From NCBI GenBank assembly GCA_002269645.1, contig NIVC01000941.1:27299-91298 (forward strand): DNA of 64,000 nucleotides, in the 5' to 3' direction. Positions 29,228 to 62,688 of this stretch are shown in pieces. Every line of letters starts with the position of its first letter. Within the stretch, counting starts at the first letter, position 1. The position numbers and the translations under genes were made by a program. The notes under the pieces are model-generated. The model ran no database searches. It was not told where the DNA came from and was given only the letters and a program-made list of their open reading frames with translations. The stretch is from Macrostomum lignano. Taxonomy: Eukaryota.

Positions 29228-29648
29228 GCCTTTTACTCGCGTAGTCTATGGCTTTTACTCGCGTAGTCTATGGCTTTTACTCGTGTAGTCTATGGCTTTT
29301 ACTCGCGTAGCCTATGGCTTTTACTCGCGTAGTCTATGGCTTTTACTTGCGTAGCCTATGGCTTTTACTCGCGTAGCCTATGGCTTTTACTCGCGTAGCC
29401 TATGGCTTTTACTCGCGTAGTCTATGGCTTTTACTCGCGTAGTCTATGGCTTTTACTCGCGTAGTCTATGGCTTTTACTCGCGTAGTCTATGGCTTTTAC
29501 TCGCGTAGTCTATGGCTTTTACTCGCGTAGCCTATGGCTTTTACTCGCGTAGCCTATGGCTTTTACTCGCGTAGCCTATGGCTTTTACTCGCGTAGCCTA
29601 TGGCTTTTACTCGCGTAGTCTATGGCTCTTACTCGCGCAGTCTATAGC
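29228..29648. repeat. 22-bp minisatellite (TTTTACTCGCGTAGTCTATGGC) x~19
   Basis: Tandem units. Confidence 0.95.
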
Positions 29649-35797: not shown

Positions 35798-36268
35798 GCA
35801 TCATCAACCACCTGGTGGCTACTGGAGAGCGAGATCGGCTTTTGAGAAGTGAGTTCAAACCGAGTCTGGTAGCATTTAGCAAGATCATTAATTCACAGTT
35901 TTCCAAAAAATGCATGCCATTTCAGGTACTTCAACCCTCCCAAGAGCGAGCTGCCTAACTGCACCGATAAGCCTTTCCCTTACGCTCTCAACAACTGGAT
36001 ACCCCAAGAACCGAATATTTTCAACACTCGCCACGGTGCTCTTACCCTCAGCAACACTCTGGGGATCGCCGTCATCAACTTGGTTGGCTGTCTGCTCACT
36101 CTGCTGCTGGCATTGCTGGAGAAGGCCTGCATCAACCTCAGGCCGCGTTTGAATCAGTTAAGAGGCAACGCGTTAAAGGACTGGCGACGACACAGGGCTG
36201 GGACTGGTGAAGCTGCGCAAACAGCTGCCAAAAATCAGACAAAAGAGAAGATGGAGTCATACGTCTAA
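35798..36268 (+). pseudogene. iGluR-like B' relic: only the end of exon 9 and exon 10 remain
   Basis: Near-identical to 55890-56350 of gene B. Upstream 35150-35590 resembles 50120-50360, implying loss of about 5.5 kb containing exons 1-9. Confidence 0.85.
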
Positions 36269-37859
36269 CGCTTGAATTTTCACTTCTTCCATTATGAAGT
36301 CCAATGATTAATAAATCTGTAAATATTTGATTCACAGTTTATTCTTTTATACGAAAAACGAAAAGAAAAGATGGTTACTTATTGATCATGTGCCTCATTG
36401 ATTAAGCTGCTAGGGATGTCATGATCCCAGCTGGCTCAATTCAACTCAGATAATTTATTCGTTTAGTTGGACAATCCGACAATAATACTTTACCGATGCG
36501 AAGCGCCATATGACGTAAATTTTAATGCGATGCAAAGCAAGGAAATATTATTCTGCAAAAGTCGTTTAGACATTTCGGCCAAAGCAAGAAAGTGCCAATC
36601 GGTATTGTTTTTTTATTATGTCATGGCAACCCACGCCTGACCTATCCGTTAGTGAATTGTTATGACACTCTGACCCTTGCGTCACTGCTAAAGCTTCACG
36701 CAAGCATGGCTTTATCATTGACCCATTCTATTGTGTAAAGCTTTCTTAAGTTCCGAATCTTTCACGTGCTCCAACTTACGCACAAGATTTAAGGATCGTC
36801 TCAGAGTTCTTTAGTGCGTTCGGTGAAACTTTCGCCATGGCTTACAACTATGATCTAGTAAACTCGGTCAGCCAATCCAGTTAGTCCTCGTCCCGTAAAG
36901 TTTCGCTCCACTGTCCCAAATGAAGTAACACGGAATGCGAACTTACTGTACTGTCATTTGGCTCGCGTGGCCCAAGGAAGTGCACAATTGGGACGTTTCT
37001 GATGCTAATTTTTGTATCAATAAAGCGTTTTTAAATAGACAGTAGCCGCGCATATTCGCTTTGACTTACAAAAGATTCACCGAACGAAAATTTACGCCCA
37101 CGGCAAAAAAACCATACGATCACTTCACCAAAAAAATGTACGCCACAGTCTAATAACGCATTTACTAATACTTACGCAGGCGCACACGCATACGCACAGT
37201 GTGTACAGAGATATTGATTTTTTTGTCTGCAGGGTTTTGTTGTGCGTGCTGCGTCAGTAGGGTTTCCCCACCCCGGCCTTTCTCTCTCTCTCTCTCTCTC
37301 TCTTTGTGCCTCCGCCTCTCGCGCTGGGTTGGGCCGGTCGGTCGGGCTGGGGTTTGTGGGCTTAAGCCTCACCCTAGTCTGGCCGGCGGCCAGCTCAGGG
37401 CCGGTCTTGTGCGCGGGCCGGCTCAGTCGCCCCGCCCTTCCCGGCGGCTGGTGATTGGCTGGCCGGTTGGGTGAGGTGTACTGGCTGGGTCTGTCGGCTT
37501 GCCCCTCCCCCCTTTTTGTGCTATTTATACGTGCGCCCCGCCCCACCCCGTCCCGGGCCCTCCCCCTAACCTCGCTGGCTGTAGAAGAGTCCAAATAAAC
37601 GCGATCGCGGTACGCTGAGGCATTCACTGCGTTGTTGAATCTGCTCGAACCAAGTGTGAGTCTTCTTTTTTCTCTGGGGTGCCGCGCTGGGACTCGAACC
37701 TTTCTGGGACCGGCAGGTGAACCTTCGCCAGCCAAGTCATTCCGTGAACTCTCGCAGCACATCTAGGGCCGGTCTGGTGAACTTTCGTCGGCCGGGCCGT
37801 GGTGAACTCTCGCCGCGTTAGGGGCAATAAGCGGGACCTGGGTGTCTCCCAGCAAGGTA

Positions 37860-38000
37860 GCCCAGCCAACCTAGCCGGATTACAGCCGGGCAACCCCAGG
37901 GGGGCACAACAGTTGCATATATACACAGGACTGATTGGGGAATCGAACCTACGAACTTTGGCAAAAAAATCAGGTGCGCAACCGCTTCGCTACTAATTCG
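37860..38000 (-). mobile_element. tRNA-derived SINE head or degenerate tRNA pseudogene
   Basis: The minus strand has an A box TAGCGAAGCGG and a B box GGTTCGATTCC, but no intact cloverleaf. It sits in an insertion absent from the duplicated block. Confidence 0.45.
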
Positions 38001-38990
38001 CGGTAGTGGTGCTGATTAATAAATATTGATCGAATGGTTTGGCAAGTCTGGCGTTCAGCCAGTCAGGATCGAGTATCAGTTTGAAAATTAATCCGCATCA
38101 ATGCTGAGTTGTCATTTAAGCCCACAACAGCACTTGCTCAACAATATATTATCATCCGTTTAAATCCACCCAATCCAATGGGTGGATATCCATCCAATGC
38201 TTGAGATGACTTGCTTTGGTACTGCGCTCTATGCAAATTTCTAAGCAGAATAACATGGGCGTGTGACAAATTATCGTGGTCGTGTGACAGACTGAATGAA
38301 AAATTACCCTGTTTAAAAGGAAAAACCATAAGCCAGGCTCGGCCCAGCTTTATTTGTACATTGGCTGGCCAATCGCTGTTAGCGGGGCTGGAGTGCTTCC
38401 CGCCGCATTGTGTTTGGGGCGGGCCCGTCGTGCATTGGTCTGGGGTTGGATGCGCCGCCAACTGGGCGGGAGTGGGTTTCTGTGAGGGGGCATTTTTAGC
38501 CCCTGCGACCGCCTCGCTCTGTCCCGCTTCGCTGGCTTGCGTGCGTTTTTTCTGCTTTTAGTCACCCCCTTACTTGCAGTCTCTGCAATTTCTATTTTCT
38601 TTTCACTTTCGTTTATATTTTACTTTTCCAAATCGCTTACATTAGCAAATATACTGGTGTTTCGTATGTTGCCCATATAGGGCGTTAGGATGTTTTTCGT
38701 GCTCTGCAAGTGTTGTCCTCTGCTCTCTCCCTCCGGCCGATCCGTCAATGTAAATTTAACTTTCTACTCTTTGCCTCGAGCGCGCTCGTTTGTTTAGAGC
38801 GCTTTCAAGCTCACAACTCATTGCCAAGCAAGTTGCCAAACTTTGAGATCATTGGCGAAGCGGGTCGTGATGCCTTCAAAGATATCTAAGGGTATTCGGA
38901 AATCTAGGGCATGTTTACATATACGAGTATATGTAAGGTGATACGAAACTTGAAACTCACTAAAATTGAAGCTTCCCAGACAGCGCAACG

Positions 38991-41900
38991 ATGCGACATC
39001 TTACTGTTTTGCAGCTGGGCTTTCTCATTCTGATTGCAGGCTGTAGCGGAACGCAGGCTCAGAGCAACAACATTACACTGGGTTCGTTCAATCTTGTCTA
39101 CTAATGACTCTCCTTGGTCCAGTGCCACAGTCTGTTCAAATGCAGATGAAGCTCGTATTCAATAAATTTTAAGTTACCAAAAATTTGAGCAAAGAAATTC
39201 ATCATGCCGCATGTGCGCTACTAATGAATTCCTTTCAGCCCTATTGTGGAATGAGGAGGGCACAGCCGCGATGGCGAAGGACTTATTCGAAAAACATTTC
39301 CGACCGGCCATTCTCGAGGCCTGCCCGTCAGCGCCCGGCATCAATCAAACCTCCGTTAATTTTGTGGAGATCATTCACAACAAGCTTATGGACATCCCGG
39401 CTGCTATGACCAGTAAGAAGCATTTATTGCTTTTATTAATCTCTAAAATTTCTAAGGCTATAATAGAAAACATCTACGAACCCATTATGTTACTCGGTTA
39501 GAATCCGTTGAGATATGAGATGATGATAGTGCGTACCTTCGTCAGTTTACCTGTCAGGTAAAAAAAAAATTAAGAAGGCGACGGTAACTGCCGAATTAAT
39601 TCAAATATGAGCGACGTCGAACCTCATCGATGCAAGTTCGATACAATGTTAATCGATGGACTTAATTAATTCGAGTAGGCATAAATTTAAACTTAGATAA
39701 AAAATTATTCTCCAAACTCAGACTTTGCCAGCCTTGCCAACTGCTTGTTCATCGGTGCCCACACTGAAGTATCGATGGTGCCGCTGTTTGCTCAGGCCAA
39801 CTTGTCGACCGGCCTGACCTCGGGCTCTGTTGCTGCCCGCCGCTATCCTCGCATGCGGCTGCACAAGGTGGCGCCGATCCCAGTGCCGCTGGTCTCGGAC
39901 GGAGTGTTGCGATCGCTTGTAATGTCTCTTGGCGCCAGCGAAGCAAAGCAAAGCCGCCTCAGCATCATTCTTGGCACCGGCTACGAAGCATTTCATGTTG
40001 AATTTTTTGCTACAAAGTTTCCAGGCTCGGTTCAGCTCTACCGGCTTAAGCCGGGTGCAGAATACGACCTTATTACAAGGCTCCAATTTAAAACGACCGA
40101 AACCTTTCTGCTTGCATGCAAACCAGAAGAAGCCGAGGTTTTCCTTTCTGTGGCCTTCATAAATCGGCTTCTGCATCCAACTTATCGTTGGTTTCTGTTC
40201 AACATGGTGAGACTAGATACTTTGTCTAGAAACAGTTTTCATATGTAAGGTACTGTATTTTTGAGTAGGAAAAAATAGTAGGGAAAATTGAAGACGAGTA
40301 ATACCCGTAGTGCATTTCTATGATAGGAACTAAATAGACAGCTTAAATCTGTTTGAAAAAACTATATTACTCGTACATTACGCATTTTGTACGCATATTA
40401 GATTGACCTTGTATTTGTAGCTCCTGGTAGAGAGAAACAACTTCGGTGGCTACGTGATTGTGTCCAAGAATATCACATCAATGGAGTTCGGCCCAATATC
40501 CACTGCTATCAAAAACGGCCTAACTACGACGCGATCAGTTTACCTGTTTGATCTCTTGACTGTTTGGTCAGTTTACTTAAAAAACATTCTTTGTAACGAG
40601 GTGAGAGGCCACATTCGAGTTGTGCGAAATTTTATTAAGCTTTTTATGTCATTCAAAGCTTCAAAGTAATGGGATCATTAATAAATAGTTGTCATTAAAT
40701 AAATTCACTCAAAGAAACACATTCGCAATGCAGATTGACTGAAGAGATGCATGAAGCTATAAATATAGGCTTATTTCTACTGTGCTTCAATAGCATTGTT
40801 ATTCATCACGAATAGTTTCTTCACTTATTTTAGGCATCCAGAGTGAACAGAACTGTTGAAGGCCTGACCGGTTCTTTTAGCTTGGGCCCGGACGGCACGG
40901 TAACCAGGAAATTCTGGCGGATGCACTTTTACAAAGGACTCGGCGATCAGCGTGAACGGGTGAGGCCTCCATTGTTGCAGTGTTTTCTAATCGTGTCAAA
41001 CTTGTTGCGATTTTGTTTTTCTACGAGATCCTCTTTGAAATTGTACCCCAGCTCGGATATCGTGCTGGGATTTCTGACGCTTATCAATTTCAAAATGAAT
41101 TTCAAAAGCGTGTCACTCTCCCTAAGATCGGCAACTGGTCCAGTTCTGGAGACTTCTTCTTCCTCCCGGCAACGCCGAGAATACCGACTGATGAGGTGTT
41201 GAAGCAAGAGCTCAACTTGAACGTGTTCCGAGTAGTTACTGTACTGGTGGGTTTTCCAGAAACAGTTAACTCTTCCTTCAACAACTAGTTGAAGACGCTG
41301 CATAATTTCTCGTCTAACAAAACTACTTCTTCATTTCAGTCACCTCCGTTTGTGCAGTTCAGAAAGGGCTACGAGAATCGGACTGACGTACCGCTCTACA
41401 ACCGCCTAGAAGGGTTTGCGGTGGACATGTGCAAGAAGATACTGATGAAAATGTCGGTAAGTTTAAACTTTAACTTGTCGATAACTCTACCTTAACATTT
41501 TTGTGTAGAGGGTTTTAAACAGATTTTTAAAATGCAAATTCCCAGAAGACCAGTCACTATCCTAATCATATATTTCCCTCACTTCTTTAAATAAAAGGCC
41601 ACCAAAATATTGCGTTGAGGAGAGAAGATAGTGAAAACCAGTTCAAAGACGATAGGAAATGCGTCAGCTAGATAGTCAACTTACATGCTCTGCAATAATC
41701 GCGGTAAGAAACAACTGACCCCTTTCCTTCAGCTGAACTCCGTTGAATTCTTTCTACAACCTGATGGTATCTTCGGCTCCTACGATCCAGTCAAAGGATG
41801 GAGTGGCATGGTAGCCACTCTCATGCTAAATGATGCCGACATGGCCTGCGCTTCAATGTCCGACACGGAGCTGCGCCGTGGCGTTGTCAAATTTACGCAG

Positions 41901-43422
41901 CCCATCTTATTCAACCAACTGTCCATCCTGTACTCGAAGCCAGAGGTCAATCCAGTTGAGCTACTATTTGAGTTTCTCTCTCCGCTACACCTGTACACCT
42001 GGCTGGCCTTGCTCGGTTCCGGCTTCGCGTCGGGGCTGGTGCTGGCGGTGCTGCATCGAATTAGCAGGAACGAACAACGGCTCAGCTTGTACGAAGCGAT
42101 CTACGTCGCATTGGGCACGATGATCCAGGGCGTGAAGACAGCGACACCGGATCGTCCGTCTGCAAAGCTAGTGAGAAAAAAACCGTAGAAAATAAAGTGC
42201 ACCGTTTCTAACAAGCGCCAATACTGTAGGAGGCACGCACTCCTACTCACAATCAAAAAGGATTTACGGCGGCCCAGACTTTTCAATTGTCAGACATGTA
42301 GCTCGCACACTGTCTGTGCTTTGGGGGGTTGATCCTCATGGGTATGAATCGCACGGAACATTTGCAATTTTCGCGAAAAGCCGTAAATGAATGTGGCCAA
42401 ACATGGAATCCAACCAGGGTTCGTAGCGCGAGGGTCAGGGGTCGTACCGCTGAGCTTCTCTGCCTCCGAACAGTAGTTAATATTAGAGTAAATTTCTTTC
42501 TCGCATTCGATTTTGGCAGGTGACAGTGGTTTTCTGGCTGTTTGTGTTCCTCTTCTTGATTATCTATGTGTCCAACTATGCAGTCAAGCGGACCCTGAAG
42601 CACATCCAAACGGAGATCAGGGGACTGGAAAGCCTGCAAATACAGGAGGCGTATGAATACGGTACGCTGTACGACTCTGTGTACTTGGGCTTCATGAAGA
42701 AATCAATTGATCCGCTGGTGTCAACGACCTACCAGTACATCGCCGACAACCCGGAGCGCACTCAGCCGCGGAACATCAGCCAGGCACTTAGCCTCGTCAA
42801 TACTGGCAAATTTGCCTTCCTCTATAGCAACGTTTTGAATGAGTACTACGCTAAGATGGGTTGTGGCCTTAAAGTAGTGGGCAGCTTCGGACAAGAAACG
42901 ATGAATTTGGGTCTACCAAGCAGTATAGAATATGATGATTTGATCAATAAGATCATTGACCGACTAATCAGCAGTGGAGAGCGAGACCAGCTCTACAAAA
43001 AGTGAGTCGAATTCGCCTTTATTGAAGACGGAGACAGCTCAGGATTGAATCAGTACATAAAATCAGAGTTACCTTTTTCTAAATTCCTTGCTTGCAGGTA
43101 CGCAAATCCGCCCGAAAGCGATCTGCCTGACTGCACGAACAAGACTCTACCGTACGCCATTCGCGATTGGATTCCAAAAGAGTCTGAAAACGTTGGCACC
43201 CGACGAAGCGCTGTGAACCTCAACCACACACTCGGAATTACGATTATTAATTTGGTGGGCTGTCTGCTGACTCTACTGTTGGCTGCCCTGGAGTTGGCCT
43301 TTCAAACCTACAGGGAGCGACTGCGCAGGCTTCGGGATGACATGTTGAAGGACCTGAGCCTCCGCATGGAGTCTGCCAATGCAGCCGCATCTGGCGATGA
43401 TCTGATGGAGTCAAACGTTTAA
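38991..43422 (+). CDS. Divergent ionotropic glutamate receptor/IR-like subunit A1, join(38991..39081,39239..39412,39722..40206,40421..40600,40834..40959,41127..41246,41340..41456,41733..42170,42520..43001,43098..43422), 845 aa
   Basis: Signal peptide MRHLTVLQLGFLILIAG, ATD-sized N-terminus ending GLTGSF/IGNW, S1 (EGFAVDM, DGIFG, WSGMVATL, SMSDTELRRGVVKFTQP), M1, P-loop LGTMIQG, M3 YVSNYAV, S2 YGTL..GKFAFL..NEY, M4, C-terminal ESNV. Exon phases sum to 2538 nt. Confidence 0.85.
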
Positions 43423-44402
43423 TCCGTGTTGTATCGGACTGCAGTTTGATACGTCAGTTGAAAACAATTTTCCAACTGTGTCAGCGGTGGAGGGAAAACA
43501 AAAGTTGATTGATTGAAAAAACTTTTCATCATATTTAATTTCAATCAATCAACTCTCTTTAACAACTTTTGAATATTTACTCAGTCTATAATCAGTGTCC
43601 TTCAAAAGAATAACGTATCTGTACATGGTACAATGAGATGTAACCATCGTTAACTAAACTGGGAGTCAATCCCTACATATATAATTCCTGCAACAAGATG
43701 TCCAGTCGTGAGGCTCGAGTTAATTTTTCCAAAGGCGCAGCACGGAGAGCACGAGGAGCTTAGCTGATCTCAGTTCATCCAACAATATTCAGAGACCTAC
43801 GGAGTGTCAGAACGTGGCAGGTCAGCAGACACTCAACTGTGGTTGTCTCTGAACTTTTTGATCTAGCCATAAATTGCGCTATTCTTAACACCTTCATCTG
43901 ATTGGACTTTTCAGAGATGACCTGCAATTTAACCAGCTCGTATTCGTATTCTTTCATTCCTCCACCCCGGGAACAGCGGCAGGCACAAATATTTTCTATG
44001 CCTCATTTTTCGGCTAAAAAGTTAATTTCGAACGATACCAATCAACAAAGTACGGTAAATCAGCATTTAGAATTCCAACTTCTGCTCCTGAAAAACATTA
44101 TACCATTACGAGCGTATACGAGCTACTTTGTTCCAATTTTTTTTTTAAATTATGAAATATTCAATTAATACAGGTATTTACTGTAATACGTACTGTAATA
44201 TGTACTGTAATACAGTACTGTCAGGTATTTTTGTGTCCAATCGGCGTTTGCTGATTGGTTGTAAACACCCACCCCAAGTGCACCCCTCCGCCGTGAGGTT
44301 TATATCACCTAGCTTTACTCAGCCTGCCTCACCTTTCTCGCGCTGCATGAAATTTTTTTTATCGTACGGAGTAGCGTGAGTGCTGCCTAGGCTGCAACTG
44401 CA

Positions 44403-45476
44403 ATGGCCGAGATTTTAATTGACCAAATGACTGCAAGGCAGCTTAGAGACCGTCTACGCCAACTGGGACTGCCCAGTGGCGGTCGCAAGCGAGAGTTGCA
44501 AGTCAGACTGGAACAAGCCAGTTTCTCAAATCAAGCCAAGCGACGTGGACGGCCAACAGCCACTCACTCGAGCGAAATCGACCGAGTCAGCACCAGCAGC
44601 AGCGACGACGATGAGGAAGCGACCCTGGACGAGGCTGGCGCCCCGCAGGGCACCGACGATCTGGACCAGAGGATCGCCCGTCAGGAGAAGCTGCTTCGGC
44701 TGAGGACTCTTCAACGCCAGACTGCTGAGATCGAGGCTGAGCTGGAGAACAAGCCTGGCCAACAGAGCCGTAAGTTGCGGACCCCCTTGCCGATTGACCG
44801 GTCCCCTGCTGCCCATGAGCCGGAGCTGGGACTGCCAGACCTGGGCCCTCAAGGCCTCTACAGCACTTCTGCCAGGCCGTCGGGACCGTCAAAGCCCCTT
44901 CTGGTAAAGGACTTTATCAACCGTGATGGCGAGGAGCCTGCCTCTGGCGAGAAGTCCAGAGTCCGGACTGAGCAGATCTCGGCGGGTCAGTGGGTAGCAG
45001 GCAGCAACCGAATCCTGCTGAAACTCCTCGACGAGGGGTCCTTGGTCACCGTTAAGGATGGCGCGGTGGATCTTGAACAGCTGAAGGCCTACGTTCACTA
45101 CTGTGTACAGTTCGGCGAGTTTTTGCACCAGGGTTTCAGTCAGGCCGCCCTCAACTGTTACGATGAAGACTTCAGGATCCTGCAACATCAGTCTAGCGGC
45201 AGCTGGGAGCGGGAGTCGCTGCAGCTGCTATCCAAGCACATTCTGGCACCAAAGTCAAATCAGGGCGGCAACGCGATCTCCTAGCGCACCAATTTCAAGC
45301 CCAGTAGGCCAAAGCAGCAGCTGTCCGGCTTCGTCGGCCCGATCGATCCTGAGGGGCGGGAGCTGTGCGTGAAGTTCAACCGCAACGGCTGCCTACGGCG
45401 CGACTGCAAGTTCAGGCACATCTGCTCCGCCTGCTACGAGGCGCGCCCGCGCCAGTTCTGCACTTCAAAAAACTAG
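44403..45476 (+). CDS. ORF1 gag-like protein with N-terminal SAP domain and C-terminal Cys/His knuckle, interrupted by an in-frame TAG at 45282-45284
   Basis: MTARQLRDRLRQLGLPSGGRKRELQVRL fits the SAP consensus. After the TAG the same frame continues into CVKFNRNGCLRRDCKFRHICSAC..FC and stops at 45474-45476. Confidence 0.75.
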
Positions 45477-47200
45477 ATCGCGGCCGGCCGGGGGGCTCAA
45501 CTGGCAGCGCAGCTGCCCCGGCGGAAGCCAAAGTCGAACCCCCGCTGCCCTCCGGCTGGCCCTGTCCCAAGCCCCTCGAGTCCGTTGCTTTCTCATCCGA
45601 CCTCGCCACAGCCGCCTGGGAAGCTGAGCTGACTGACGATCCTGACCGCGAATTCCTGCTGAATGGCATCCGCAACGGTTTCCAACTCACCTGCCCTGAC
45701 CCGTCAGAAAGAGCCTCAACTATGTCAGAAACCCAGAACTACCTATCAGTCAACAGTTACCGGCAGCTGGTCGAGCAGCAGGTGCGAGAGGAAGTCCTTA
45801 ATGGCCGCTACGTTCAAGTCAGTAACAAACCGGAGGTCATCAGCGCCCTTGGCGCCATTCCGAAGGGTAACAACAAGATTCGACTCATCCACGACTGCTC
45901 TAACCCTCCGGGTCTCTCCCTAAACAGCCGATTTTCTTCCGACTACCGAATCAAGTTCGAGACCGTCAGTCACTTCACCGCCAAGCTGCAGCCCGGTTGG
46001 TTCATGGCCAAAGTCGACCTCGCCAATGCCTACCGGAGTGTCGGCATCAGCCCGCACGATTTTCGGCTCACCGGCTTGAAGTGGAAATTCAGCGACCAGC
46101 GCAGCGACTCGTACATCTGCGACACGCGGCTCCCCTTTGGCGCTGCTGCCTCCGTAGAAGTTTTCCACCGCCTGAGCCAGGCCGTCAAGCGCATGATGCA
46201 GAGACGGGGCTTCAACGATATCGGCAGTTATCTCGACGACTTCGCCATAGCAGCCTCCAGCAAGGACGACTGCCAGCTCGCTCTCGACACCCTGCTCAAT
46301 CTGCTGCGGAAGCTTGGCTTCTCCATCAACTGGAGAAAGGTGGTGGCACCGTGCACCAGACTGGTCTACCTGGGCGTCCTCATCGACACCGTCAGCGGCC
46401 TGCTGGAGCTTCCGAACGACAAGATCGACGCCACCAAGTCTCAGCTACAGTCCGCGCTCTCTCGCAAGCGCATCACCAAGCGCCAACTCCAATCGCTCTG
46501 TGGTTGCATCAACTGGGTCTGCCAGGTGGTCCGCATCGGGAGGTGCTTCCTGAGACCACTCCTGCTCGAGCTCAGCGACCTGAAGCAGCAGCGGCACAAA
46601 CTGCGCGTGCACAATGATCTCCGCGAGATCCTTAGCTGGTTGGACGCCTGCCTGGCCGCCTCCCCCAGCTGCAAAATCTGGCGTTCCCACGGGCCCAGCT
46701 GGGCCATCGAGTCCGACGCGTCCAATTGGGGCGGCTGCGGCATCATCCGCGGCCCAGGCATCACCAGCTGGCTCATCATGGACTGGCACTGCGACTCAAC
46801 CGAGATCGAGCCGCTGCACATCAACTTCAAGGAAAGTCTCGCGCCAGTGCTTACGGCCCTGCATTTCCAGCAGCAGCTGCAACCGGGCAGCCAGCTTGTG
46901 ATCTACTCTGACAGCACCGCCGCAGTCGGCGCCATCAACAAGGGCTCGTCGCCAAATCGGGTCGTCAACTCGGCTCTGCAACAGCTGATGCTCCTCGCTG
47001 CGCATCGCGACCTCTCCGTCCAGGCCTTCCACGTCCCTGGGACATTCCAGATCTTCGCTGATAGTGGCAGCCAAGCCGATGACATCAGAGAGCTGACAAA
47101 CTTCCTGCTCCGGCTCTTTGGCTCTGTTCACAACCTTAGCGAGCACACCCTCTCGCCAGCCACCTGCGAATTTCTCGCCGTACAGATCGCCCGCCTCAAG
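45474..47200 (+). CDS. ORF2 reverse transcriptase plus RNase H (end approximate; the open frame runs on to 47929 over the YR gene)
   Basis: RLIHDCS.P, KVDLANAYRSV, DTRLPFG, SYLDDF, YLGVLID (RT); ESDASNWG, HINFKES, YSDSTAAV, HVPG..FAD (DIRS-type RNase H). Confidence 0.9.
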
Positions 47201-51420: not shown

Positions 51421-51901
51421 GTCTGCACTGTCAGAATTAGCAAAAACATTTAGATAAAAATAGAGCCCATGGACTTCAGTGCGATAGTCCGATGCATTAT
51501 ACTCTACTCACACTCACCTCCCTATATGCAATTTGTAATCATTGTAATAATTGTAATTTTATAAGGATGCTTGACACTTCAGGTGGTCGGATAGACCTCA
51601 GCCAGAACCTTGTGCAGGCCGTGGGAGAGTGAGATACATACACAAGTATCTATACAGTGCCACCCTTCTGATATAAAACTGCTTGATAATTCCGTCACTC
51701 AGCTTGGATTCAAACCCCGTCTTAAATTCATGCCTGTAATTTCAGTCGCAGCGGGGGTGAACAGTTTCTGGAGCGTATGTCAGGCGTATTCAGTGTCTTA
51801 GCCGCTGCCCAGCCTGCAGAACACCGCAGAGGTAGGTATATTAGACTCACAGGCTCATTCGTTTAACTCACCACTTATTTTCAGTCTCGTCAATTCTTCA
51901 A

Positions 51902-54900
51902 ATGCAGCTGGTTGCTTTCACTTGGAGGATTCTCTCCCTGACACTGATAGTCGATGGCAGCTACGGGACCAACATCACATTCGGTAGGCTTGGTACCGGA
52001 GTGCTGAGCTCTGGGAACTAACTAACTTATCTTGTGTATTGTAAGTGCACCGTTACATGCACACCAATTTCTCTCATTCTCTTCGCTCTAACTGGCCATA
52101 CCCCAAAGCTTCCATGTCCATAGTAATTGTCATCACGTGACTCGGGAACTTAGAGAAAGCCAATGCGAAATCACAGCAGAAATCACAAAATACAAGGAAG
52201 TTCGATTCACTCGTTTAATTCCCAGATATTTCCCATATCCTTAGTTGATACAAGGACAACTTAATATATGTTACTTGAGTAGTCCTTGAGTTGATAGTCG
52301 CTCGTATGCGGCATACCTAGTTACTCTATATGTTGCTCGCAATCTCGGGTTCACCCACTGAATTCTGGCCCATGATTGTCAACCCATGGTTTACTCATAT
52401 GTGAGTGTAAATCAGCTTTATTTGCCTCCTGACCGAAATTCAGCGAAATTGACGACATTTCAAAAGTATTTTTGCAACCACGCTTTTTATACACTATTAA
52501 TTATATAAGACTTCCACAAAGTCAGAAGGCCGGTAAGCAAATGTCAGGAAAATAAACACAAACTGAAAAAAATAAACAACTCAATCACATCGCAAAAGTC
52601 AAATGAATCGCACAAACTACTCAACACTTGCTTTCAGCGCTACTGTGGAACGAAGGCGGCTCGGCTGCAATCGCTAATGAGCTCTTTGAGACCAAATTTT
52701 GGCCGGCCATTATGGAAGCCTGTCCGTCTGCTCCTGGCATTAATGACACTTTTATCGATTTTGTTGAAATTGTTCAAACGACGTTAATAAATATTCCGAT
52801 GGTTTTAGAAAGTACGTGGCGTAAGAAGGCATTTAATACTTGCACTTAAAATTAGCTTTGAATTTGCACCAAGCAAGATTGAATGCTGGCATTTAAATTT
52901 TTAAATAATATGACCAAAATAGATTTATTAACTTAATTTTGGCTCGATAATCGCCTCATTTTTATTTGACTCGGCATTCTTTTAATTGTTCAGACATCTC
53001 CAGTCTCGGCAACTGCTTGTTCATCGGTGCCCACGCAGACGTATCGACGGTACCGCTGTTTGCTCAGGCCAACCTGTCGACCGGCCTGACGCCGGACTCT
53101 ATCGCTGGTCGCCGCTACCCCCGCATGCGGCTGCTCGAGGTTGCGCCGATACCAATGCCGCTGGTCTCGGAGGTCATGTCGCGAGCACTCACGCTGTCTC
53201 TGGGCTCCGGCCTGGCCGAGGGCAGTCGGCTTAGCATCATTCTCGGAAGCGGTTACGAAATATCTCATTTTAAACTACTGGTTGTAAATTTTCCCGGCTC
53301 GGTAAAATTTTATCGACTTGTGCCAGGTGCAGAGCAGGAGCTGGTCAGCGTACTTCAGTTGGATCTGGCGAAGAACTTTCTTGTTGCGGCTAAGCATGTC
53401 GAAACAGATGCATTTATGGCAGCCGCGTTCAGTGGTCAGCTGTTGAATCCATCGCATCGCTGGTTCCTGTTCGATACGGTGAGAATGGATTGCTGCTTCT
53501 AGATAGCTAGGTGACATCAATAAGTAACGATTGTCTGTTCCCATATTTAGTTCAGTTTAGTTTAATTAGATAGTTTTTCAGGCGATTTGAGTACTGCCGA
53601 AAATCAATGTGACAGTCAACCCGCAGACAGCGAAGAGAGAAACAGTTATGGCCAGTCCACTGACCCCTGAACTCGGAAGGCACACATTTACACGGGGTGT
53701 ACAACGGCCCTGACTTTCTCATCGTCAATCATGTAACACATTGTGTCTTGGGGGTTGGCCCCAATGGGCTAGAATCACTATTTACCTCAAAGGAAAACGA
53801 AAATGGTTACTTTGCCAACATGCATCCAGAATGCGACCTAATGAGCAACAGGGAAAATCATATTTTTCTTACAGTTATTAGTCCAGAAAAATAACTTTGA
53901 CGGCTTTAAAGTAATTTCAAAGAACATCACGTCAATGGACTTCGGCCCAATATCCTCGCTCATCAGCAATGGTCTAAACTCAACGCAAGCCGTTTATCTG
54001 TTCGATCTTCTATCGATTTGGTCGGTGTATTTAAAGAATATTTTTTGTAACGAAGTAAGAGTTTTTTTAGTTTTTAATTTGTTTCTCCGAGCAAAGTTTT
54101 TAACTCATAGTTACGATGCATTATAATTTTCTCATCTAAGCCGACAGAAGTGAACACAACATTCACGGGAATGACCGGTTCGTACGATTTAGCTCCTGAC
54201 GGAACTGTCTCCAGACAGAACTGGTTCATGTACTTTTACAAAGGCCTCGGCGAACAGCGAGAACGGGTCAGACGCACTTTGATTTTTTCATTCGCAATAT
54301 TCTGAATAATTTTTATCACATAAAAGTGCTTAACAGGCATGAGAATACAAACCATTTTTATCCAAACCCAAAGATCGGCAATTGGTCAAGCGCTGGAGAG
54401 TTTCACTTTCAGCCGGCCTTGGTCAGAACTACAACAGATGAAATGCTGAAGCGGGAGCTAAACTTAAACGTGTTTAGAGTGGTCACCGTATTAGTACGTA
54501 CGAGCTAGATTCTTAGTACAGCTCTTTTCATAATTTGAATTCGAGAGTGTATACTTCACATATCTCGCCGTGATTTCCCGTTTCAGTCCAAACCGTACGT
54601 TCAGTTTAAGAAGGGCTACGAGAACCGGACCAACGTTAGTCTCTTCGATCGCTTAGAAGGATTTGCCATAGACATGTGCAAGAAGATCCTGGAAAACATG
54701 TCGGCAAGTAGCAATATCGGTGTATATTGGGATTTTTATGTTTTACAGGCATTTGTAATTAGCTCTTAGTGCTGGGTTTCGAAATAAATGAACTTCGTGA
54801 CGGAAGGTTCTCGAGTTTCATGTGCTATGCTACAGCTGGTCTGTCTGTAGATTCTGCAAACTGGCTACTTTCCATCCCGTAGACACAATGATAGGAGTTT

Positions 54901-56336
54901 ATTCAAGATCCTTTACTCGTACACACCAAACCAGTTGGAATCAGTGGAGATGTTTCTGCAACCGGACAATAGTTACGGCTCGTTCGACCAGAGAAAGGGC
55001 TGGAGCGGCATGGTGGCCACGCTCATGCAAGGCGGGGCAGGCCTGGCCTGTGCGCCGATGTCCGACACAGAGGAGCGGCTCGGCGTCATGAAGTTCACGC
55101 AGCCGATCAAATCCTACCAGCTGTCTATTCTGTACGCCAAGCCGGAGGCCAACCCGGTGAAGCTTATGTTCGAGTTCCTCTCGCCGCTGCATCTGTACAC
55201 TTGGCTTGCACTGATAGGCTCAGTTCTGGTCTCCGCCTTGGTTCTGGCTGTTTTGCATCAGCTCAGCAGGAACGAGCACAGTTTTAGCCTATACGAAACG
55301 GTCTTCATTTCCTTCGCTTCGCTGATCCAAGGCTTGACTGGCGTCACGCCAAATCGACCGTCGGCCCAGTTAGTGAGTACTCAGACGGTTGTAGTTTTAA
55401 ATGAGAAAGCGATCATTTTCATTCCCATTGTTCTTACGGGTTACTTAATTCATTCTTAGGTCACAGCGGTGTACTGGCTGTTTGCTTTTGTAATCTTAGT
55501 CGCCTACGTGACAAACTATGCCGCAAAGCGGACTTTGGAACGAGTCCAGTCGGAAATCACGGATTTAGACAGCCTCCCTGTGCAGGAAACCTACGAATAC
55601 GGTACTTTTTTCGGCTCTGTCTACCTAAGCCTCTTGAAAGGCTCCAACGATCCTGTCCAGCAGGCGGCCTTCAGCTACATCAGCAACAATCCGGAGCGCA
55701 GGCAGCCGCGGAGCGTTAGCCAGGCTCTGAGCATGGTCAGCGGCGGCAAGTTCGCTCTTATTTACAACTCCGTCATGAACGACTACAATGCCAAAATGAC
55801 GTGCAACTTTCATGTCGCCGGCAACTTCGGACTGGACAGTGCGATGTTGGGTCTGCCGGAGAGTGCCGAATATGACGATCTGATCAACCGCATCATCAAC
55901 CACCTGGTGGCTACTGGAGAGCGAGATCGGCTATTTGAGAAGTGAGTTTAAACCGAGTCTGGTAGCATTAATTCACAGTTTTCAAAAAAACGCATGCCAT
56001 TTCAGGTACTTCAACCCTCCCAAGAGCGAGCTGCCTAACTGCACCGATAAGCCTTTCCCTTACGCTCTCAACAACTGGATACCCCAAGAACCGAATATTT
56101 TCAACACTCGCCACGGTGCTCTTACCCTCAGCAACACTCTGGGGATCGCCGTCATCAACTTGGCTGGCTGTCTGCTCACTCTGCTGCTGGCATTGCTGGA
56201 GAAGGCCTGCATCAACCTCAGGCCGCGTTTGAATCAGTTAAAAGGCAACGCGTTAAAGGACTGGCGACGACACAGGGCTGGGACTGGTGAAGCTGTGCAA
56301 ACAGCTGCCCAAAAATCAGACAGAAGAGATGATTGA
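51902..56336 (+). CDS. Divergent iGluR/IR-like subunit B, join(51902..51983,52638..52811,52994..53478,53875..54054,54141..54266,54374..54493,54587..54703,54935..55372,55460..55941,56006..56336), 844 aa
   Basis: Internal exon sizes are identical to A1 and A2 (174, 485, 180, 126, 120, 117, 438, 482). Motifs: APMSDTEERLGVMKF, SLIQG, YVTNYAAK, YGTFFGSVY. Intron 7 needs a GC donor. Exon 1 is assigned by signal peptide plus NITF and phase. Confidence 0.82.
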
Positions 56337-58265
56337 ATCATATGCGTAACTTTTGAATTTGCACTTTTTCCTTTATAAAGTGCAATCACGAACGAATCTG
56401 TAAACATTTTAGTCCCAATTTATTTGTTCTATGCAAAAACGATGAGAAAATATGTTTTGATAAGTGATCATAAGACTCATTGTTTAAGCTGCTGAGGATG
56501 CCATGATCCCAGCTGGCTCGATCCAGATAATATAATTGATTTGTTAAGTTTGGAAGTGATGTAATCGTACGCTCGTACTTTGTTGATGATAAGCGTAAAT
56601 TTTAATGCAATGTCATTTTGATATATTCAATACCTTCTTTTTGAACATTTAATCGATTCTACGAGTATACAAGTGCAAATAGTTATCGTTTTTTAAAATA
56701 AATACAGAATACAGCAAAAAATGTTGGAACTGCAATTAAGTGGCGCTTTATTATCGACCGATTTTTAATGAGTGGCTTGGCAACCCGCGCCTGCCCTGTC
56801 CGATACTGAATAATTCTGACACTTTGACTCTTGCGTCAGTGCTACAGCTTCGCGTACTCTTGGTTTTATCATTGAGCCGTTCTATTGTATTAAAATTTCT
56901 TAAGTTCCTTACCTTTTTGCAAGTTAAAACTTACACACGAGAGTTAAGAATTGTCTCAGAGTTCTTTAGAGTGTTCGGTGAAACTTTTGGCATTGTGACC
57001 CAACGTTATCTTTACTGACTACGTTCTGCCAGCGGAAGAGCGTATGATCGTGTCAGACCGCTGTCCGGACTGACCTGGGAACCTAAGCGAATGCTTCGCT
57101 TCGAGTAGCTCAGTTTCTCGTAGCCCGTCCTGTGAGTTCTCGTCTCGTATAATCTCGGTCCACGGTCGCAAAGAAAGTAACACGGAGTGCGAACTTACTG
57201 TACTGTCACATGGCACGAGGGAGAGAGGGCGTCGGTGGTCTTGGTACAGTCGTGCTATTGCCACTCCATTTTCTGAATATGCTTGCCTGAGGCTGCTCAC
57301 CATAGCAAACCCAAAATCAATAAAGCGAAGACAGTAAACCTCGCAAGCTCGAAATGTCATGGTAAGCTCGAGTTTTCGTCCTGTCGAGTCCTGACACAAG
57401 GAATGAAAAAATCAACCAAATATTGTAGAAGCCTCAAGTTCATGCTGTACGCTGGTAGGGGACGACATAGGACGGGCTGACCGAGTTGCTCGGTCTGACG
57501 TGAACATACGTTCGTCCGCTAAAAGAGCAGAGCCTTGCTTCAATTTTGCATTCGCACAGCATGCGTCAAACGCGTCGCAACTGAGCCAAGTTTTCTCGGT
57601 CCCTCGCTTTCTGCATCAGGCATGCAGCTGTCTCAGAATAATTGTGATGTTTCTGATGCTCGAATTTTTATAGAATTAAGGCGTAAATTTTTTATTTTAA
57701 TATACAGTATTAGTCGCGCATATTTCTGCATGATGGCAGTGTCGCATAACTTCACCGAAATATTTTACACCAAAGTAGAAACGCAAGCTTTATTGAACGG
57801 GCCTAATGTCCTCCACTTGGTAATTTTCCTGGTTCAGAAATAGTGGTCGCGTCAGCTGATTGCAAGTGGGGTAGCCATTGTGCGGTTTTAAGGTTGGTCT
57901 CGAATTTATCTGGTTAGTTATGACTTGCTTTGGTACTCTTATAAGTCCGCAGTCCCTCTAATGTAAATTGCTAAACAGAATAAACACGGGCGTGTAAGCA
58001 AACATGGAAAGACAAATTCCCTGCGTTTGATGGGAAACCGTAAGACAGACTCGGTCGGTCCAGCGTTATTGCAAATTTAACTAACTTTCTACTCTGCCTC
58101 GAGTGCGCTATACTGTTTAGAGCGCTTTCAAGCGCACAGCTCATGGCCAAACAAGTTGCCAAATTTGGGGCATGTTATCATATATAAGATATTTTTATGC
58201 ACCTCCAGAGAGGTGATTCGCAACTTGAAACTCACTAAAATTGAAACTGTTCAGACAGTGCAACG

Positions 58266-61200
58266 ATGCGAAATCTTACTGTTCTGCAGCTGAGCTTTTT
58301 GATTCTGATTGCAGGCTGCAGCAGAATGCAGGCTCAGAGCAACAACATCACACTGGGTTCGTTCAATTTTGTCTACTGAGAACTCGCTTTTGTCCAATTC
58401 TATTTTCATTTGCAGACATGCAGATTTTGTGCTTCTAATGATTTCCTTTCAGCCCTATTGTGGAATGAAGAGGGCACAGCCGCACTGGCGAAGGACTTAT
58501 TCGAAAAGAAGTTCCGACCGGCAATTCTCGAGGCCTGCCCGTCTGCCCCCGGCATCAATCAAACTTCCGTTGAGTTTGTGGAGATCATTCACAAAAAGCT
58601 TATGGACATCCCGGCTGCTATGAACAGTAGGAAGCATTTATTGCTTTGATTAATCTTTAATGAATCAAAAGCAATCATTAAGTTATATGCACCCATGAAT
58701 CTACTGGGATTGAATTCGATTCGATAAGATAGAAACAATACGTACCTGCAACCTCGGTAGTTTACCTGCCAGATAAACTACAAATTCTTAAGAAGGCGAC
58801 GGTAACTGGCGAATCCATTGAGTAAGAGCGTCGCACCTCATCGATGCAAGTTCGATGCATAAATTATTAATTGTTAATCGATTGACTCAATTAATTCGAG
58901 TGAGCATAATTTTTTCCGGCCTAAAACACATCTCTAAAAATTTATTCCCCCAACTCAGACTTTGCCAGCCTTGCCAACTGCTTGTTCATCGGTGCCCACA
59001 CTGAAGTATCGATGGTGCCGCTGTTTGCTCAGGCCAACTTGTCGACCGGCCTGACCCCGGGCTCTGTTGCTGCCCGCCGCTATCCCCGCATGCGGCTGCA
59101 CAAGGTGGCGCCGATCCCAGTATCGCTGGTCTCGGACGGAGTGTTGCGATCGCTTGTAATGTCTCTTGGCGCCAGCGAAGCAAAGCAAAGCCGCCTCAGC
59201 ATCATTCTTGGCACCGGCTACGAAGCATTTCATGTTGAAATTTTTGCTACAAAGTTTCCAGGCTCAGTGCAGCTCTACCGGCTTAAGCCGGGTGCAGAAT
59301 ACGACCTCATTGAAAGGCTCCAATCAAAAAATGCCGAAACCTTTCTGCTTGCATGCAATCCAGAGGAAGCCGAGGTTTTCCTTTCTGCGGCATTCATAAA
59401 TCGGCTTCTGCATCCAACTTATCGTTGGTTTCTGTTCAACATGGTGAGGCTGGAATCGACCAGATACAACTTTCATGTGATTAAGGTACTGTATTTTTGA
59501 GTAGCCAAAATTAAGGACCTATGACAGCTGTTGTCTTTTTAGCTCCTGGTAGAGAGAAACAACTTCGGTGGCTACGTGATTGTGTCCAAGAATATCACAT
59601 CAATGGAGTTCGGCCCAATATCCACTGCTATCAAAAACGGCCTAACTACGACGCGATCAGTTTACCTGTTTGATCTCTTGACTGTTTGGTCAGTTTACTT
59701 AAAAAACATTCTTTGTAACGAGGTGAGAGGTCACATTCGAGTTGTGCGAAATTTTATTAAGCTTTTTATGTCATTCAAAGCTTTAAAGTAATGGGATCAT
59801 TAATAAATAGTTGTCATTAAATAAATTCACTCAAAGAAACGTTCGCAATGCAGATTGACTGAAGAGATGCATGAAGCTATAAATATAGGCTTATTTCTAC
59901 TGTGCTTCAATAGCATTGCTATACATCACGAATAGTTTCTTTACTTATTTTAGGCATCCGAAGTGAACAGAACTGTTGAAGGCCTGACCGGTTCTTTTAG
60001 CTTGGGCCCGGACGGCACGGTAACCAGGGAATTCTGGCGGATGCACTTTTACAAAGGACTGGGCGATCAGCGTGAACGGGTAAGGCCTCCATTGTTGCAG
60101 TGTTTTCTAATCGTGTCAAACTTGTTGCGATTTTGTTTTTCTACGAGATCCTCTTTGAAATTGTACCCCAGCTCGGATATCGTGCTGGGATATCTGACGC
60201 TTATCAATTTCAAAATGAATTTCGAAAAAAATGTCACTTTCCCTAAGATCGGCAACTGGTCCAGTTCTGGAGACTTCTTCTTCGTCCCGGCAAAGCCGAG
60301 AATACCGACTGATGAGGTGTTGAAGCAAGAGCTCAACTTGAACGTGTTCCGAGTAGTTACTGTACTGGTGGGTTTTCCAGAAACAGTTAACTCTTCCTTC
60401 AACAACTAGTTGAAGACGCTGCATAATTTCTCATCTAACAAAACTACTTCTTCATTTCAGTCACCTCCGTTTGTGCAGTTCAGAAAGGGCTACGAGAATC
60501 GGACTGACGTACCGCTCTACAACCGCCTAGAAGGGTTTGCGGTGGACATGTGCAAGAAGATACTGATGAACATGTCGGTAAGTTTAAACTTAGACTTATC
60601 TGTGAACAGTTTAAACTTAGACTTATCTGGAAACTCTACTTTACCGTTTTTGTGTAAAGGGTTTTAAACAGATTTTTTAGCGGCTGAAATATTTTAGTAC
60701 ATAAGTTGCACTGCTTTGAAGCAACACTAGACTACTGCATTTAGCTCGTAGATGTAAATAGGCCGGTTGTCACTATTCTAATCACAGATGTTCCTCACTT
60801 CTTGAAATAAAAAAACATCAGATAATTATGTTGAAGAGAGAAAATAGCAAAAAGCCGTCAAAGATTCAAAGACGATAGGAGATGCGTCAGCTAGCTAATC
60901 AACTTGCATAATCTGCAATAATCGCTTTGTATTCGTGAGTAGTTCTTGCTGGTAAGAAACAACTGACCCCTTTCACCGTTTTCCGTAGCTGAACTCCGTT
61001 GAATTCTTTCTACAACCTGATGGTATCTTCGGCTCCTACGATCCAGTCAAAGGATGGAGTGGCATGGTAGCCACTCTCATGCTAAATGATGCCGACATGG
61101 CCTGCGCTTCAATGTCCGACACGGAGCTGCGCCGTGGCGTTGTCAAATTTACGCAGCCCATCTTATTCAACCAACTGTCCATCCTGTACTCGAAGCCAGA

Positions 61201-62688
61201 GGTCAATCCAGTTGAGCTACTATTTGAGTTTCTCTCTCCGCTACACCTGTACACCTGGCTGGCCTTGCTCGGCTCCGGCTTCGCGTCGGGGCTGGTGCTG
61301 GCGGTGCTGCATCGAATTAGCAGGAACGAACAACGGCTCAGCTTGTACGAAGCCATCTACGTCGCATTGGGCACGCTGATCCAGGGCGTGAAGACAACGA
61401 CACCGGATCGTCCGTCTGCAAAGCTGGTGAGAAAAAAACCGTAGAAAATAAAGTGCACCATTTCTAACAAGCGCCAATGCTGTAGGCGGCACGCACTCCT
61501 ACACACACTCAAAAAGGATTTACGGCGGCCCAGACTTTTTAATTGTCAGACATGTACGAGTAGCTCGTACACTCTCTGTGCTTTGGGGGGGGGGGTTGGT
61601 CCTCCCAGTATGAATCGCACGGAACACTTGCAATTTTCGCGAAAAGCCGTAAATGAATGTGGCCAAACATGGAATCCAACCAGGGTTCGTAGCGCGAGGG
61701 TCAGGGGTCTTACCGCTGAGCTTCTCTGCCTCCGAACAGTTGTTAATATTAGAGTAAACTTCTTTCTCGCATTCGATTTTGGCAGGTGACAGTGGTTTTC
61801 TGGCTGTTTGTGTTCCTCTTCTTGATTATCTATGTGTCCAACTATGCAGTCAAGCGGACCCTGAAGCACATCCAAACGGAGATCAGGGGGCTGGAAAGCC
61901 TGCGAAGACAGGAGGCGTATGAATACGGTACGCTGTACGGCTCTGTGTACTTGGGCTTCATGAAGAACTCAATTGATCCACTGGTGTCAGCAGCCTACCA
62001 GTACATCGCCGACAACCCGGAGCGCACTCAGCCGCGGAACATCAGCCAGGCACTCAGCCTCGTCAATACTGGCAAATTCGCCTTCCTCTATAGCAACGTT
62101 TTGAATGAGTACTACGCTAAGATGGGTTGTGGCCTTAAAGTAGTGGGCAGCTTCGGACAAGAAACGATGAATTTGGGTCTACCAAGCAGTATAGAATATG
62201 ATGATTTGATCAATAAGATCATTGACCGACTTATCAGCAGTGGAGAGCGAGACCAGCTCTACAAAAAGTGAGTCGAATTCGCCTTTATTGAAGACGGAGA
62301 CAGCTCAGGATTGAATCAGTACATAAAATCAGAGTTACCTTTTTCTAAATTCCTTGCTTGCAGGTACGCAAATCCGCCCGAAAGCGATCTGCCTGACTGC
62401 ACGAACAAGACTCTACCGTACGCCATTCGCGATTGGATTCCAAAAGAGTCTGAAAACGTTGGCACCCGACGAAGCGCTGTGAACCTCAACCACACACTCG
62501 GAATTACGATTATTAATTTGGTCGGCTGTCTGCTGACTCTACTGTTGGCTGCCCTGGAGTTGGCCTTTCAAACCTACAGGCAGCGACTGCGCAGGCTTCG
62601 GGATGACATGTTGAAGGACCTGAGCCTCCGCATGGAGTCTGCCAATGCAGCCGCAGCTGGCGATGATCTGATGGAGTCAAACGTTTAA
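58266..62688 (+). CDS. Divergent iGluR/IR-like subunit A2 (recent duplicate of A1), join(58266..58356,58453..58626,58959..59443,59544..59723,59954..60079,60248..60367,60461..60577,60989..61426,61786..62267,62364..62688), 845 aa
   Basis: Colinear, near-identical exons to A1 with intact splice sites and frame. Confidence 0.85.

Follow-up and report, generated by a model that had tools for sequence, protein, structure and literature searches.

A probable two-unit tandem array of divergent ionotropic glutamate receptor-like genes in the flatworm Macrostomum lignano

Contig NIVC01000941.1 of the Macrostomum lignano assembly GCA_002269645.1 carries, close to its end, a cluster of genes related to ionotropic glutamate receptors (iGluRs). 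The 64 kb analysed here, positions 27299-91298 of that contig, are called the window, and all positions given below refer to it; the end of the window is also the end of the contig. Between 35798 and 62688, three intact genes have been identified on the plus strand, named A1, B and A2 in the order in which they lie (Table 1). A preliminary description made from the sequence had recognised five loci sharing one 10-exon plan, the other two being relics named B' and C. That common plan holds for the three intact genes but not for B' and C, which are mere fragments, the latter consisting of two exon-sized pieces that are treated separately here as c1 and c2.

Gene models and relics

Exons 2 to 9 have the same lengths in A1, A2 and B (174, 485, 180, 126, 120, 117, 438 and 482 nt), and all introns of the three genes are GT-AG, with the sole exception of B intron 7, which is GC-AG. 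The assembled open reading frames (ORFs) encode 845 aa in both A1 and A2 and 842 aa in B, the last with c1 as its first exon. The NCBI model BOX15_Mlig034115g2 (P0001 in our protein set, 804 aa) corresponds exactly to exons 2-10 of A1; the signal-peptide exon 1 has been added here through a phase-1 GT-AG splice to 39239, which is conserved in A2, in a second contig described below and in the paralogue P0003. The resulting junction, with NITL ending exon 1 and ALLWNEEG opening exon 2, agrees with the start of P0003. For A2, the UniProt entry A0A1I8JER3 (P0002) shows 99% identity in the best high-scoring segment pair, and for B the UniProt fragments A0A1I8J5F7 and A0A1I8J6F5 show 100% and 99% identity, respectively. 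Deposited entries of the family are named hypothetical or 'PBPe domain-containing' proteins. The A1 and A2 proteins are 96% identical to each other and 61-62% identical to B.

What is left in the relic B' is a 32-bp stretch of exon 8 (35768-35799), the final 52 nt of exon 9, from which 1 bp has been deleted, intron 9, into which 13 bp have been inserted, and exon 10 (from 35926), which has lost 1 bp close to its end. Short colinear matches continue upstream of it (34814-35589 to 50044-50351), and it is because of these that B' is taken to descend from a full copy of B; judged from the alignment, its ancestor has shed about 4.6 kb plus about 0.9 kb through deletion. On the second contig B' has a longer piece of exons 7/8 than in the window, so the B' deletions differ between copies.

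The two pieces of C have fared differently. When c1 is spliced to 52638 it continues in phase, giving the complete 842-aa ORF with a signal peptide. Both c1 and its donor are conserved on the second contig, where 1.6 kb separate it from exon 2 of B, against an intron of 3.8 kb in the window, and where no c2 lies in between; the 2.1 kb of the window that hold c2 (49467-51597) are absent there. The c2 boundaries are homologous to those of exon 2, with an AG acceptor and a GTAAGT donor, but its length is 160 nt, not 174 nt, and it is therefore frameshifted. No further exons of C were found between 49970 and 52600 by tblastn at E<1. Closer to exon 2 of B, at 52306-52348, lies a possible degenerate original first exon of that gene, which begins ATGCGGCAT where A has ATGCGACAT, carries a TAG in frame at its fifth codon and is shorter by 48 nt; its likeness to exon 1 of A could be a short, chance match. 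Since c1 can be joined in phase to 52638, with a complete signal-peptide ORF as the product, and since no intact first exon lies beside exon 2, c1 is probably exon 1 of B, and we infer that c2 is a dead exon-2 copy inside the first intron of that gene. The earlier statement that C and B' are pseudogenised stands for the deletion remnant B' and for the frameshifted c2, but probably not for the intact c1. A UniProt fragment of 121 aa (A0A1I8JE17, P0017) is about 70% identical to both A and B across the stretch in which the amino-terminal domain (ATD) ends and the ligand-binding segment S1 starts. It points to a further close paralogue outside the window, perhaps an intact equivalent of the relic C.

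Table 1. Positions of the receptor genes, relics, duplicated segments and other features in the window.
Feature	Position	Strand	Basis or remark
B', deletion remnant of a B copy	35768-36255	+	alignment to B
Gene A1, 10 exons, 845 aa	38991-43422	+	
A1 exons 1-10	38991-39081, 39239-39412, 39722-40206, 40421-40600, 40834-40959, 41127-41246, 41340-41456, 41733-42170, 42520-43001, 43098-43422	+	
c1, signal-peptide exon MLSLIIVLLLLCSNGIRVSGENFTL	48780-48855	+	intact; phase-1 GTAAGA donor
c2, exon-2 relic, B-like	49810-49969	+	tblastn E 1e-5
Possible degenerate original B exon 1	52306-52348	+	read from sequence
Gene B, exons 2-10	52638-56336	+	GT-AG junctions homologous to A
B exons 2-10	52638-52811, 52994-53478, 53875-54054, 54141-54266, 54374-54493, 54587-54703 (GC donor), 54935-55372, 55460-55941, 56006-56336	+	
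Gene A2, 10 exons, 845 aa	58266-62688	+	junctions homologous to A1
A2 exons 1-10	58266-58356, 58453-58626, 58959-59443, 59543-59722, 59954-60079, 60248-60367, 60461-60577, 60989-61426, 61786-62267, 62364-62688	+	
Segment copy 1: 'x' region, B', A1, 3' flank; split by retrotransposon	34814-48773	+	colinear blastn
Segment copy 2: 'x' region, intact B, A2, 3' flank	50044-63801	+	colinear blastn
High-identity tract, 94-100%	39719-43947 vs 58956-63236	+	sliding-window identity
Second high-identity tract, 98-99%	35798-36197 vs 55890-56277		sliding-window identity
DIRS-like retrotransposon, 4,355 bp, apparently intact	44180-48534	+	Pfam SAP, RVT_1, Phage_integrase
NAD kinase gene, 377 aa	30836-34355	-	NCBI annotation
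Rhodopsin-family G-protein-coupled receptor ORF	14422-15267	+	7tm_1
Rhodopsin-family G-protein-coupled receptor ORF	19671-20801	-	7tm_1; weak match to nematode Srw chemoreceptor model
469-aa ORF	10991-12400	-	TNP-like RNase H N-terminal domain

The duplicated segment and its history

Comparison of the window with itself pairs 35798-36468 with 55890-56550 at 89% and 38757-43938 with 58082-63214 at 74-95%, and finds exon-sized matches of 66-77% between the A copies and 52990-56227. The five loci are not independent of one another: a segment of about 14-15 kb is present twice in colinear form, at 34814-48773 and at 50044-63801. The homology of the two copies stops at 48773 and 63801, six bases 5' of the c1 ATG, and past that point the alignment score is no better than shuffle level. 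A c1-like exon right after A2 was looked for, but the 200 bp left there (63802-64000) show no homology above shuffle level and so lend no support to a full C gene at that place.

Background identity between the copies is 72-89% by sliding window, with a stretch between about 37000 and 38200 in which they cannot be aligned, and two tracts of much higher identity stand out against it (Table 1). Introns 4, 5, 6, 8 and 9 of A1 and A2 are 95-100% identical, against 73-80% for introns 1-3 and 7, and the gene at the A1 position on the second contig is a block mosaic of the A1 and A2 variants of the window. The near-identity of these A introns goes beyond what selection explains, and gene conversion is therefore the best reading of the A1/A2 similarity, rather than youth alone, so far as the alignments can tell; the block mosaic is direct evidence of exchange between copies. 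The earlier designation of A1 and A2 as recent duplicates therefore holds only in part, the neutral background being lower and the 94-100% identity confined to tracts.

The second contig, NIVC01001234.1 (224,871 bp), carries Mlig034115g1 at a locus that is colinear with window positions 30698-59977. Well inside that contig, an NAD kinase gene is followed by B', then by an A gene, by c1 and B, and finally by the beginning of a second A gene. It lacks the stretch 44180-48534, occupied in the window by a retrotransposon, as well as the c2 region, and has the longer B' piece; intact on it are c1, the ORFs of its A and B genes, and every splice site, including the GC donor. The retrotransposon, which lies after A1, is DIRS-like, with one gag-like ORF that bears a SAP domain, one for a reverse transcriptase and an overlapping one for a tyrosine recombinase; its empty site on the second contig means that the insertion is recent or polymorphic.

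It had been conceded beforehand that the duplication might be an assembly of two haplotypes; in a wider form of this objection, two haplotypes or homeologues would have been joined serially near the end of a contig. A2 indeed ends only 1.3 kb short of the contig end, and the M. lignano assembly has several near-identical contigs per locus. However, the independent contig repeats the order NADK-B'-A-c1-B-A internally, which makes a stitched-haplotype artefact very unlikely, and the two units are structurally unlike, one having B' where the other has an intact B, with an identity of only 72-89% once the conversion tracts are set aside. The objection largely fails on these grounds, such an artefact being scarcely credible.

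The course of events that would best account for the locus starts with a segment of about 15 kb (c1-c2-B-A-flank) that would have been duplicated head to tail beside the NAD kinase gene. Deletions would then have removed the larger part of the exons from the upstream copy of B, with B' as what remained, and the DIRS-like element would have been inserted later, after A1. Ongoing gene conversion would homogenise A1 with A2 over their 3' 4.2 kb, and B' with B over exon 10, with c1 presumably working as the first exon of B and c2 lying dead in its first intron. The tandem birth-and-death proposed earlier is seen here as local gain and decay of copies, though the relics would be by-products of one segmental duplication plus deletions.

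Between A1 and A2, the rates of synonymous (dS) and non-synonymous (dN) substitution are 0.051 and 0.021, giving omega 0.40 (30 synonymous and 39 non-synonymous differences; Fisher p 2.7e-4). Between A and B, dS is about 1.7 and dN about 0.25, with omega 0.14, and B of the window differs from B of the second contig at 12 positions (dS 0.012, dN 0.004, omega 0.31). The genes are under constraint, which is no more than moderate over recent time. The gene at the A1 position has transcript support through the NCBI annotation of M. lignano, which we take to be transcript-based.

Domain architecture, family and pocket residues

A1, A2 and B, each of about 845 aa, consist of a signal peptide, an ATD of LIVBP type, the ligand-binding segments S1 and S2, M1, pore loop and M3, then M4 and a short tail. 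Proteins of the family match Pfam Lig_chan-Glu_bd (69 bits), Lig_chan and SBP_bac_3 (38 bits), which bears out their membership in the iGluR superfamily. The HMMER alignment to GluK3 runs from S1 through S2, as expected of a bipartite ligand-binding clamshell interrupted by the channel, and a channel domain with M1, re-entrant pore loop, M3 and M4 is present by both Pfam Lig_chan and the AlphaFold2 helices. About 380 aa lie upstream of S1, in good agreement with the 385 or so counted earlier.

Pfam ANF_receptor does not match these N-termini even at E<=10. The best sequence matches among solved structures are GluK2, GluK3 and GluA1-4, at E about 1e-33, with alignments that begin in the last part of the ATD; the best 60 PDB sequence matches are all non-NMDA iGluRs, nearly all of them named kainate or AMPA receptors. 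By hhalign, the family N-termini match canonical ATDs with 98.4% probability and E 4e-15 over A1 residues 149-369. Two proteins were modelled, P0001, which lacks the first 42 residues of A1, and, for the ATD alone, the paralogue fragment P0228. The AlphaFold2 model of P0001 (pLDDT 85, pTM 0.75) has helices at 477-500, 509-521, 532-567 and 738-795 and aligns with full-length GluK2 (8fwq_A) over about 847 columns, with TM 0.68 and E 1e-41; GluA chains, including GluA2, align too. The P0228 model (pLDDT 84, pTM 0.82) matches ATD crystals of GluK2, GluK3 and GluK5 at TM 0.60-0.62, as well as LIVBP and the ANP receptor. The hhalign, full-length and ATD-only comparisons all uphold the earlier description of these genes as ATD-bearing.

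When 1.84 billion representatives were searched exhaustively with HMMER, M. lignano proteins scored 430-1574 bits; the next match stands at 217 bits and is followed by a continuum of ordinary iGluRs. All of the strong matches come from M. lignano. Extending the count beyond the window gave about seven lineages below 70% identity, with B and the fragment P0017 included, most of them on 2-4 contigs of the redundant assembly. On NIVC01002135.1, Mlig005297 (10001-17574, +) and Mlig022707 (19583-26174, -) lie tail to tail; this pair is found on four contigs, which fits a redundant, polyploid-like genome.

A neighbour-joining (NJ) tree with 100 bootstraps was built from about 405 columns of the LBD (ligand-binding domain) and the TMD (transmembrane domain) and rooted on two plant GLRs. 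The family members from M. lignano form a single clade in 92/100 bootstraps, and this is joined in 86/100 by a cestode clade of 'Glutamate receptor U1/kainate' proteins (Taenia, Echinococcus, Mesocestoides), which carry the same M3 and pore signatures. The family stands, together with other long branches, beside and not inside the 76 AKDF-type (kainate-, AMPA- and delta-like) matches, among them human GRIK1 and proteins of molluscs, ticks and starfish. The GluN2D-like P0171 branches first, outside both the family and the AKDF-type group, so that neither the tree nor the PDB matches place the family with NMDA receptors, and among the best 150 family matches no named one is called IR25a or IR8a. 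In this tree the family falls on the non-NMDA side, outside the canonical AMPA, kainate and delta matches. The gap from 430 to 217 bits speaks for the lineage-specific family of the preliminary description, though it is not limited to Macrostomum: in the tree the cestode proteins join the clade.

Residue numbers are those of GluA2, which can be transferred by motif equivalence. The equivalent of Arg485 is retained in every family member and the LBD disulfide cysteines are conserved. At position 705, A1 and A2 have S and B has N; the residue is D in the paralogues Mlig005297, Mlig015771, Mlig025413 and Mlig022707, and E in the cestode relatives. Positions 653/654/655 read S/V/Y in A and B. The Q/R site is Gln; an Ile there was considered and ruled out, both the HMMER and the MAFFT alignments placing Gln at that site. 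In M3, where canonical receptors have SYTANLAAF, A has IYVSNYAVK (3/9) and B has AYVTNYAAK (4/9), and the whole clade shows 'NYA' and, two positions further along, a basic residue; the changes to the gate and to 654/655 are thus clade-wide and not peculiar to A and B. In the reference metazoan iGluR phylogeny, sequences with <4/9 residues of SYTANLAAF were left out (PMC6307864). The set that goes with amino-acid gating, Arg485 with an acidic 705 and Ser/Thr at 654/655, is incomplete in A and B. As these proteins are without the acidic alpha-amino-binding residue and the Ser/Thr for the gamma-carboxylate, and have a rewritten gate, canonical gating by glutamate or glycine is unlikely, to judge from their residues; the pocket is as non-canonical as had been proposed.

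Possible function, surroundings and known counterparts

We favour, with a probability of roughly 0.7, the reading of the region as a tandem array with two units, in which the paralogous types A and B belong to a divergent flatworm iGluR-like clade. Several points weigh against it. The contig ends 1.3 kb past the A2 stop codon, so that the right side of the array is beyond view, and the duplication model requires an additional loss of c1' and c2' from copy 1. The tree contains no IR25a/IR8a, Epsilon or Lambda references, and, being an NJ tree of about 405 columns with long branches, could owe its flatworm grouping partly to long-branch attraction. Omega values of 0.25-0.4 among close copies indicate no more than moderate constraint, and that A1, A2 and B function as channels is purely our inference. 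B is unannotated in the NCBI records of both contigs, and A2 is likewise without NCBI annotation; with its uncertain first exon and its one GC donor, B could be silent or recently dead. An extension of this last point would have the whole cluster decaying, with B and perhaps A2 as unexpressed pseudogenes still free of lesions. The missing annotation of both at both loci fits that idea, as do the stop in B's A-like exon 1, the GC donor in B intron 7 and the decayed state of the adjacent copies B' and c2. We consider it unlikely, since the 2.5-kb ORFs and the full set of splice sites are undamaged on two contigs, omega is below 1 and an in-phase signal peptide is available from c1; near-identical A copies, moreover, may have been collapsed in transcript mapping.

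Within the favoured reading, A1, A2 and B would probably assemble as tetrameric ligand-gated cation channels, cations being predicted because of the Gln at the Q/R site. The retained Arg would hold a ligand carboxylate, and A and B, in which the acidic alpha-amino contact is gone, might recognise some other ligand with a carboxylate, or else serve as partner subunits for paralogues that retain Asp at 705. One possibility, somewhat doubtful, is that the family consists of fast-evolving but otherwise ordinary synaptic or neuromuscular subunits, with A and B as non-ligand-binding or modulatory partners in the manner of delta or high-affinity kainate receptors. The nearest sequences and closest solved structures being kainate and AMPA receptors, the existence of paralogues with D at 705, the small number of cestode relatives per genome and the retention of the ATD, which directs iGluR assembly (PMC7882480), would all suit such a role, but the M3 gate and 654/655 are altered in the entire clade and not only in A and B. 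Another proposal, that of a chemosensory family in sensory neurons paralleling the tuning ionotropic receptors (IRs) of arthropods independently, seems improbable to us. It gains from the lineage-restricted expansion into about seven lineages in clustered loci, from the presence in the window of two rhodopsin-type G-protein-coupled receptor ORFs, one with a weak Srw-chemoreceptor match, and from the fact that A and B keep the Arg and lose amino-acid-binding residues, which marks acid-sensing IRs in Drosophila (PMC7882480). However, the full ATD is kept, unlike in tuning IRs, the acidic 705 of other paralogues and of the cestode relatives fits ordinary amino-acid receptors, and the expansion is modest, much of its apparent copy number being due to a redundant, polyploid-like assembly in which a gene occurs on 2-4 contigs. 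The most specific form of the idea, to be thought quite unlikely, would have an ancient, ATD-bearing flatworm clade with a rewritten gate (NYA..R/K) and pore radiating in the free-living Macrostomum, with A and B switching to another, perhaps carboxylic-acid, ligand and so serving as chemoreceptors, for environmental or for internal cues, independent in origin of the arthropod IRs.

Outside the array, the NAD kinase gene lies directly upstream, and 290 bp of this gene (31826-32117) recur in inverted orientation, at 84% identity, at 7994-8285. The two rhodopsin-family ORFs may be further receptor genes of the same neighbourhood, and the 469-aa ORF is probably a remnant of a P-element/THAP9-type transposase. 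Minisatellites are unusually dense between 3572 and 33951, with 14 TRF rows forming about 13 arrays (periods of 18-159 bp, about 3-30 copies, mostly 94-98% matched); examples are 3572-4073, 7067-7483, 13217-13765, 18442-18938, 26052-26683, 27200-28083 and 29230-29645, and an (AGGAG)n array occupies 28089-28407. No minisatellites of comparable size appear within the receptor array among the TRF rows of the window, and scans of the whole window for tRNA genes and Rfam families were empty.

The chemoreceptors and the ligand-gated channel complement of flatworms are poorly charted. A defined flatworm clade with cestode members and a radiating Macrostomum branch would offer a natural experiment on the limits of gate and pocket drift, as well as candidate receptors for tests in a tractable model flatworm, and the locus itself is a compact case in which tandem duplication, decay by deletion, the insertion of a transposon and gene conversion come together. 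Lineage-specific expansion of iGluRs is familiar in itself, so that the finding is useful rather than startling. A literature search with the Mlig gene identifiers and for flatworm iGluR and IR phylogenies returned nothing specific to these genes, and the broad iGluR phylogenies checked, including PMC6307864, do not mention flatworms.

The kainate and AMPA receptors (GluK1-3, GluA1-4) share with the family the order ATD-LBD-TMD-carboxy-terminal domain, the LBD disulfide cysteines, Arg485 and the Gln at the Q/R site, and they provide its best sequence and fold matches. The identity is only about 19-22%, however, the family ATD is missed by Pfam ANF_receptor, and A and B retain only 3-4 of the nine residues of SYTANLAAF, with V/Y at 654/655 and a non-acidic 705. 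Closer are the cestode 'Glutamate receptor U1 / kainate' proteins (e.g. KAL5110580.1), the sister group in the NJ tree, which have the derived M3 'ANYA..R', the pore '(F/I/V)QG' and the same absence of a Pfam ANF_receptor match; they differ from A and B in the Glu at 705, in their low identity and in having about two genes per genome among the matches, compared with about seven lineages.

The protostome IRs (IR25a/IR8a co-receptors and tuning IRs) have likewise diverged from iGluRs, with changes to ligand-binding residues and with copies gained and lost in tandem, and the acid-sensing ones resemble A and B in keeping the Arg and losing the acidic residue (PMC7882480). The tuning IRs differ in their short, non-ATD N-terminus of about 200 aa (PMC7882480), where the family has about 380 aa with an ATD fold. 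The AKDF expansions of molluscs (Phi/GluF and Zeta; PMC8437780) are, like this family, tandem, lineage-specific, ATD-bearing and non-NMDA, with variable 653/655, and lophotrochozoan 'GluR2-like/kainate-like' proteins are the best non-flatworm matches of the family, across the gap of 217 against 430+ bits. Scallop GluF proteins, unlike A and B, mostly keep both Arg485 and an acidic 705, and the transmembrane domains of GluF are described as well conserved (PMC8437780), whereas the gate of the family is rewritten. Lineage-specific, tandemly expanding iGluRs with altered pockets are thus known from the IRs and from the GluF and Zeta groups of molluscs (PMC8437780); what is new here is an uncharacterised flatworm clade that combines a full ATD with a rewritten gate.

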